A DNA stretch of 64,000 bases from Corallochytrium limacisporum Hawaii. Taxonomy: Eukaryota; Protista; Pluriformea. The translations under genes and the position numbers were made by a program. The stretch lies in the NCBI GenBank assembly GCA_002811645.1, contig PDIP01000011.1:128435-192434 (forward strand). The letters run 5' to 3'. The notes beneath the pieces were generated by a model, which saw only the letters and a list, made by a program, of their open reading frames with translations, was not told the DNA's origin and made no database searches. Shown here piece after piece: positions 37,917 through 38,193 of this stretch (the first letter of the stretch is position 1; every line of letters starts with the position of its first letter).

Positions 37917-37938
37917 AAAAAAAAAAAAAAAAAAAAAA
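37917..37938 (-). terminator. Pol III oligo(T) terminator of the tRNA gene
   Basis: T22 run on the minus strand, 31 nt after the discriminator. Confidence 0.75.
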
Positions 37939-37969
37939 GGTACTTCCCTACCAACCCTGCGACCAAAGA

Positions 37970-38130
37970 TAGCGGCGGACAGTTTCGATCTGTCGACCTA
38001 TACCCCGAAAATTCACTGGAGGCAAATCCAGTCAAGTCTACGAAGAGTAATTTCGTATGGGTGGCCTAATAAATAAACTCGTAGTTCATTCACTATGAGC
38101 CCATCGCTCTAACCACTGAGCTACGCCGCT
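37970..38130 (-). tRNA. Initiator tRNA-Met(CAT) with two introns; exons 38130-38094, 38062-38057, 37999-37970; introns 38093-38063 (31 nt, 37/38) and 38056-38000 (57 nt, 43/44)
   Basis: Acceptor AGCGGCG/CGCCGCT (A1:U72); D arm GCTC-AGTGGTTA-GAGC; anticodon stem ATGGG/CCCAT with three G:C pairs; T arm GACAG-ATCGAAA-CTGTC (A54, A60); removing both inserts gives a perfect 73-nt cloverleaf. Confidence 0.92.
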
Positions 38131-38181
38131 CTGAGGTTGCAAGGTTGGTACTGGGAGTACCGGTCTCACATGGGGGAAAAA

Positions 38182-38193
38182 TTAATATATAAA
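38182..38193 (-). promoter_or_regulatory. TATA-like element upstream of the tRNA precursor
   Basis: TTTATATATTA on the minus strand, about 20-30 nt before the start of the leader stem. Confidence 0.45.

Follow-up and report, generated by a model that had tools for sequence, protein, structure and literature searches.

The splicing endonucleases of the animal and fungal type are described as cutting tRNA precursors only beside the anticodon, measuring from the tRNA body (PMC10485636, PMC4033280). Xenopus TSEN also cleaves a bulge-helix-bulge (BHB) motif set in a non-tRNA substrate (PMC10485636). In its strict form, termed hBHBh', such a motif has two 3-nt bulges, a central helix of 4 bp and flanking helices of more than 2 bp each (PMC3728597). 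Nuclear tRNAs with several introns in the red alga Cyanidioschyzon merolae combine an intron at position 37/38 with ectopic introns framed by strict hBHBh' motifs (Soma et al. 2013, PMC3728597; PMC9602550). There, motifs of about -11 kcal/mol are processed first, and the ectopic introns are removed before the 37/38 intron, which always goes last (PMC3728597, PMC9602550). Relaxed motifs lacking one flanking helix are also processed, both in C. merolae and in some archaea (PMC3728597, PMC4090602). Finally, in the nested pre-tRNA introns of archaea, as these are summarized in PMC3728597 and PMC3978253, the structure of the RNA dictates the order of excision (Sugahara et al. 2007; Tocchini-Valentini et al. 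2009).

We describe here a tRNA gene of Corallochytrium limacisporum, an opisthokont relative of animals in whose genome spliceosomal introns are nearly absent (PMC5560861). Like the C. merolae genes, it carries an intron at 37/38 together with an ectopic intron bounded by a strict hBHBh' motif, and the energy computed for the motif of this second intron is like that of the C. merolae motifs that are cut first. However, whereas the C. merolae motifs fold independently and their introns are described as not nested, the two signals of the Corallochytrium gene share bases, one of them borrowing four bases of the other intron. The ectopic site at 43/44, which leaves a middle exon of only 6 nt, also differs from C. 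merolae, and the order of removal that was measured in the alga is one that we infer here. The likeness to the archaeal nested introns, as far as their summaries go, is that a BHB is incompatible with another fold and that refolding after the first excision would make the next substrate. In the archaeal cases the late motif appears only once earlier introns are gone, whereas in Corallochytrium the early motif also needs a piece of an intron that is still present. In addition, the late signal is here a eukaryotic anticodon-intron pair, suited to a heterotetramer-type enzyme, instead of the second BHB of the archaeal accounts. Taken alone, intron 1 resembles the canonical introns that the Sen/TSEN ruler recognizes through an anticodon-intron pair (PMC10485636, PMC4090602): it lies at 37/38, it has a C32:G(-3) pair and a 3-nt bulge at the 3' site, and its 5' site is loosely structured. 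Unlike those introns, its last four bases also serve the signal of another intron, with which its own substrate fold competes.

In the literature we found no description of an early motif that borrows bases from an intron removed later, of a 43/44 site with a 6-nt middle exon or of this arrangement in an opisthokont lineage, nor a paper that pairs Corallochytrium with tRNA introns. To our knowledge, no inter-intron dependency of this direction has been known before. A structure-dictated order (archaea) and a measured order (C. merolae, with independent motifs) are already known.

The gene lies on the minus strand (38130-37970) of the window, by which we mean the whole 64,000-nucleotide stretch of contig PDIP01000011.1 that was analyzed. 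The initiator tRNA-Met that it encodes is spread over exons of 37, 6 and 30 nt (Table 1). Both the cloverleaf and the initiator marks were read by coordinates, exon by exon, on the unspliced locus. Once the introns are removed, 21 of 21 stem pairs are Watson-Crick (7 in the acceptor stem, 4 in the D stem, 5 in the anticodon stem and 5 in the T stem). Eukaryotic initiator tRNAs are marked by A1:U72, by three G:C pairs at 29-31/39-41 and by A54 and A60 in the T loop. All of these are present next to the anticodon CAU, the two adenosines being provided by the T loop AUCGAAA; the same loop is found in the tRNA-Ala(AGC) of this genome and is hence unspecific here when taken alone. The tRNA-Ala(AGC) genes in question are three tandem copies, each with a 25-nt canonical intron (L034, G000:C143:96350-97060). 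We read the locus as a gene, transcribed by Pol III, of the cytoplasmic initiator tRNA-Met.

Table 1. Features of the split initiator tRNA-Met gene, with positions in the window
Feature	Position	Strand	Description
Upstream element TATATA..ATTTTTC	38176-38191	minus	Common to most nuclear tRNA genes here; promoter-like
Exon 1	38094-38130	minus	tRNA positions 1-37: acceptor 5' strand, D arm, anticodon-stem 5' strand, loop CUCAUA, anticodon CAU
Intron 1	38063-38093	minus	31 nt, canonical site 37/38; 11-bp hairpin at 38093-38069, tail UUAGGCC; G(-3) partners C32
Exon 2	38057-38062	minus	ACCCAU, positions 38-43; ACCC in the intron-2 central helix, or C39-C41 in the anticodon stem
Intron 2	38000-38056	minus	57 nt, site 43/44
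Exon 3	37970-37999	minus	Positions 44-73: AGGUC, T arm (loop AUCGAAA), acceptor 3' strand, discriminator A
Outer helix of the intron-2 signal	38066-38063 with 37998-37995	minus	GGCC at the end of intron 1 with G45 G46 U47 C48; pairs G-C, G-U, C-G, C-G
Central helix	38062-38059 with 38005-38002	minus	A38 C39 C40 C41 with intron-2 GGGU; one A-U and three C-G pairs
Inner helix	38055-38051 with 38010-38006	minus	CGAAA with UUUCG; 5 bp
Bulges	38058-38056 and 38001-37999	minus	3 nt each, on opposite strands, both AUA
Alternative hairpin UACGAA/UUCGUA	38039-38057 (38057-38052 with 38044-38039)	minus	Covers the intron-2 5' cut site
22-T run	37917-37938	minus	Likely Pol III terminator

Neither ARAGORN nor Rfam, the latter even at E values up to 10, called a tRNA at the unspliced locus, and we attribute this to the two introns that interrupt the gene. 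The same silence would fit a decayed or unexpressed tRNA-like sequence whose motifs are fortuitous. We consider this very improbable, since the stem pairs and the initiator marks are all in place, both splicing signals put their cuts exactly where the cloverleaf is restored, the common upstream element and a terminator are both present, and another nuclear initiator gene was not found among the tRNA matches of the genome.

The assembly consists of 24,109,830 bases in 286 contigs, and at the DNA level the initiator locus is single copy. The only other nuclear gene with a CAU anticodon among the genome's tRNA matches, for which the best first-look candidates were scored, is an elongator tRNA-Met (L032, G000:C271:13414-13548), whose 62-nt canonical intron has GAGCC at its 3' end. 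Among those best first-look candidates, the split gene is probably the only nuclear initiator gene of this genome. A TATATA followed after 2 to 5 bases by ATTTTTC(G/C) is located about 10 to 75 nt upstream of most nuclear tRNA loci (L002-L046), the initiator included, and this pattern has 37 matches in the genome compared to 8 for a reversed control. Presumably, it is an upstream promoter element for Pol III. With this element on one side and the T-run terminator on the other, the initiator gene looks active. The genome also encodes two proteins with an endonuclease catalytic domain, one Sen54-like protein and RtcB.

Several further observations concern the expression signals. Searching with the upstream element brought up tRNA genes absent from the Rfam first look. 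The tRNA genes of this organism end in very long T runs, often of 9 to 22 T, and runs of 4 to 6 T occur inside introns, for example in intron 2 of the initiator and in the intron of a tRNA-Leu gene (L064); together, this suggests that short T runs do not stop the Pol III of Corallochytrium. When the flanks are included, leader and trailer sequences of the initiator precursor are predicted to form a duplex of about 24 bp (37939-38161, minus strand), extending the acceptor stem to the T run. A GTAC..GTAC leader motif was dropped, as it was present at 4 of 36 tRNA loci against a background of 6%. Long open frames were seen in the window, in keeping with the scarcity of spliceosomal introns described for this species (PMC5560861), and for the two ORFs neighboring the initiator locus no record was found in other assemblies or strains.

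The initial annotation had proposed that the BHB of intron 2 pairs the GGCC at the 3' end of intron 1 with a GGTC of exon 3 and takes up the ACCC that forms the 3' strand of the anticodon stem. Both helices are indeed in the sequence, with C48 lying one base beyond the range first given for the outer one, and so are the other pairings that it had named: the 11-bp hairpin of intron 1 (four of its pairs being G-U), the possible C32:G(-3) pair and the alternative hairpin at the start of intron 2. With a central helix of 4 bp, bulges of 3 nt and predicted flanks of 5 bp and 4 bp, the intron-2 signal has the strict hBHBh' form. Cuts after the second base of each bulge, which is the usual geometry, fall exactly at 43/44: the first follows U43, the second precedes A44, and the cloverleaf is thereby restored.

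The 4-bp outer helix exists only as long as intron 1 is in place. If C34-A37 take the place of the intron-1 tail, at most two outer pairs can form, and these are parted from the bulge by an A-G mismatch. The duplex energy of the motif is -11.2 kcal/mol with the outer helix and -7.9 kcal/mol without it. In the T-loop BHB introns of this genome (L049, L050, L051 and L064), the T stem provides an exon-side helix of 5 bp, and introns at 37/38 have the anticodon stem in this role. For an intron at 43/44, nt 34-37 would form the exon-side strand, and these lack a natural partner; the last four bases of intron 1 take exactly this position and pair. Because the 43/44 site has no native flanking tRNA helix, we propose that it borrows one from the tail of intron 1.

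Two folds of the precursor compete for the same bases. Fold A is the intron-2 signal, with ACCC:GGGU as central, GGCC:G45-C48 as outer and CGAAA:UUUCG as inner helix. In fold B, C39-C41 pair with G29-G31 in the anticodon stem and C32 pairs with G(-3), which gives the eukaryotic signal for the cut at 37/38. The canonical signal of intron 1 comprises C32:G(-3), U33:G(-4) and a 3-nt bulge (C C A38) at the 3' site; nt 32 pairs with intron position -3 in four other canonical introns of the genome as well, and also in that of tRNA-Tyr. The two folds had been said to be mutually exclusive, and this can be seen directly, since neither can do without C39-C41 or without the G(-3) and G(-4) that intron 1 provides.

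With the strict motif enforced, the optimal energy was -55.5 kcal/mol for fold A compared to -56.6 kcal/mol for fold B, a difference of about 1 kcal/mol that lies within the error of the model; with only the outer and central helices enforced, fold A reached -57.2 kcal/mol. When the acceptor, D and T arms were fixed, fold A accounted for 0.32 of the ensemble and fold B for 0.37. In both the unconstrained minimum-energy fold (-57.6 kcal/mol; z = -3.8) and the centroid fold, the outer and central helices are present, along with the 3-nt bulge on the 3' side. The unconstrained ensemble gave probabilities of 0.68 for the outer helix, 0.73 for the central helix and 0.18 for the anticodon stem. The strict form, which includes the inner helix, made up only about 2 to 6% of the modelled ensemble, and about 0.02 with the arms fixed, because the local hairpin competes with the inner helix.

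We then considered how far chance could have produced the four borrowed bases. In 128 kb (both strands), a strict motif with at most one G-U pair occurred 12 times, mostly in low-complexity tracts of purines or pyrimidines; shuffled 64-kb strands had about 0.6 occurrences each. The outer helix accompanied only 2.1% of the matches to the central and inner helices. This figure overstates the case for GGCC, because the canonical signal also calls for G(-3) and G(-4), as C32:G and U33:G. Two of the four outer pairs use these two bases, and only the two C's are free evidence. The motif of intron 2 does sit exactly where its removal restores the 21 Watson-Crick pairs of the cloverleaf. As a side observation, the motif scan also returned a mimic of the strict BHB at positions 2140-2177 of the window (minus strand), made of the self-complementary 15-mer CATTGATCTACAATG and a one-base variant, with nothing tRNA-like nearby.

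A scan of tetramers is more telling than these counts, within the limits of a folding model. The last four bases of intron 1 were swapped for all 256 tetramers in the unspliced RNA, which gave median probabilities of 0.018 for the central helix and 0.92 for the anticodon stem. The native GGCC gave 0.73 and 0.17, respectively; for the central helix it ranked 12th of 256 tetramers, and first of the 64 that keep G(-3). To approximate the state after removal of intron 1, CAUA, the bases that precede A38 once this intron is gone, was placed at the intron-1 end of the unspliced RNA, and the probability of the central helix was then 0.036. In the model, the central helix falls to about 2% without an outer helix, and the anticodon stem takes over. 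By this modelling, the intron-2 signal owes its ability to rival the anticodon stem to the GGCC:GGUC helix.

These results bear on the order of intron removal, which had been claimed to start with intron 2. The exclusivity of the folds on which that claim was built stands, but exclusive folds alone set no order. The order is made more likely by the role of GGCC:GGUC in the model and by the order measured in C. merolae. Furthermore, the complete intron-2 signal exists only while intron 1 is present, the loss of intron 2 removes the competitor of the anticodon stem, and a vertebrate endonuclease is able to cleave a BHB away from any tRNA body (PMC10485636). Taken together, we put the probability of a preferred or obligatory order with intron 2 first at roughly 55%. 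The Sen endonuclease would cut fold A in a body-independent BHB mode, and RtcB would then join U43 to A44. As GGGU would be lost with intron 2, fold B alone would remain, and intron 1 would be excised in the usual ruler mode. Removal of intron 1 first would instead strip the exon-side flanking helix from the intron-2 signal. That cleavage takes place at all, and that RtcB is the ligase, are parts of this proposal that we infer together with the order.

A different view is that no order is enforced. During transcription, the anticodon stem can already form at a time when GGGU and G45-C48 have yet to be made, and fold B may be offered first. The introns could then leave in either order, or intron 1 first, the GGCC:GGUC pairing being mostly a by-product of the canonical signal plus chance at two C's, and intron 2 being cut as a relaxed motif without its exon-side helix. 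The near equality of the two folds in predicted energy would fit this, as would the double duty of G(-3) and G(-4). By simple counting, the remaining three outer pairs are expected in about 1 of 16 cases once G(-3) is given. The intron of the elongator tRNA-Met ends in GAGCC opposite the same GGUC and makes three of the four outer pairs in a gene that has no second intron. In addition, the processing of relaxed motifs in C. merolae and archaea (PMC3728597, PMC4090602) means that an intermediate retaining only intron 2 need not be a dead end. On the other side stand the first rank of GGCC among the tetramers keeping G(-3), the collapse of the central helix in favor of the anticodon stem when the outer helix is missing, and the invariable last place of the 37/38 intron in C. 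merolae (PMC3728597). We regard removal without an enforced order as rather unlikely, at clearly longer odds than removal of intron 2 first, whose mechanism is plausible but unproven.

A more far-reaching version of the intron-2-first mechanism can be formulated only tentatively, and we would stake somewhat less than even odds on it. It holds that the tail of a canonical intron was recruited as the flanking helix of a second, archaeal-type signal at 43/44, and that the sole initiator tRNA matures by an obligatory two-state path (BHB-mode cut, ligation, refolding and ruler-mode cut) in which one enzyme would use both modes in turn.

The initial annotation had suggested that UACGAA/UUCGUA, the hairpin over the 5' cut site of intron 2, could gate the first cut. 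Its existence is borne out by the model: it is present in the predicted minimum-energy and centroid folds with a probability of 0.6 to 0.7, compared to about 0.06 for the strict inner helix. These values speak for a selected gate on the rate of the intron-2 cut, and so on the supply of initiator tRNA. However, the hairpin is worth only -3.2 kcal/mol, and in 32% of 120 shuffles of the intron interior the probability of the inner helix was at or below the native one, so that unselected sequence readily outcompetes an A/U-rich inner helix of 5 bp. Another BHB intron of this genome (L064) has an inner helix of just 3 bp, which also speaks against a gate. We know of no signal or factor that would operate it, and the gating role, as distinct from the hairpin itself, appears improbable. 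Concerning the fate of the introns, RtcB produces circular tRNA introns (tricRNAs) in animals and archaea, and BHB cleavage leaves ends that RtcB can join. Since RtcB is encoded in this genome, circles of 31 and 57 nt are chemically possible, and their formation would be compatible with the enzymes present.

We also searched the genome for similar intron pairs by means of the common upstream element. A second 43/44 intron was not found in this search, which yielded T-loop introns, a canonical tRNA-Tyr intron and a permuted gene. The tRNA-Leu(TAA) gene (L064, G000:C238:23490-23860) contains a 57-nt BHB intron in the T loop, with an inner helix of 3 bp and a run of six T, and its 3' acceptor strand could not be matched to the 5' strand. 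It was considered as a second pair of closely spaced introns and dropped, as no BHB could be placed at its 3' end. In a tRNA-Gly(GCC) gene (L050, G000:C4:74850-75170, minus strand), a BHB-like motif arises between leader and trailer, its inner helix being the acceptor stem; this may be due to chance, because the motif is absent from the paralogue L051. Another locus (L047, G000:C242:177900-178220, minus strand) starts with a body that runs from the D arm to the 3' end, with the anticodon CGC, and has a stretch like a 5' acceptor strand with the start of a D arm about 45 nt downstream of this body. From this layout, it looks like a circularly permuted tRNA gene. The tRNA-Tyr(GTA) gene (L066, G000:C253:46860-47230, minus strand), with an ordinary canonical intron, was missed by the Rfam-based search of the genome and was found only via the upstream element.

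If the proposed mechanism is true, a relative of animals relies on the body-independent BHB mode for an essential and apparently single-copy tRNA, and one natural RNA presents both recognition modes in a fixed sequence. This RNA would then lend itself, as a natural substrate, to telling apart the two modes of a eukaryotic-type endonuclease with two catalytic subunits and Sen54. Testing would be easy, as the four intron bases can be mutated while the mature tRNA is left untouched. Finally, the mechanism would mean that an ectopic intron can become established where the tRNA offers no flanking helix of its own, with a pre-existing intron as its support, and such reliance of one intron on another would bear on the origin of disrupted tRNA genes.
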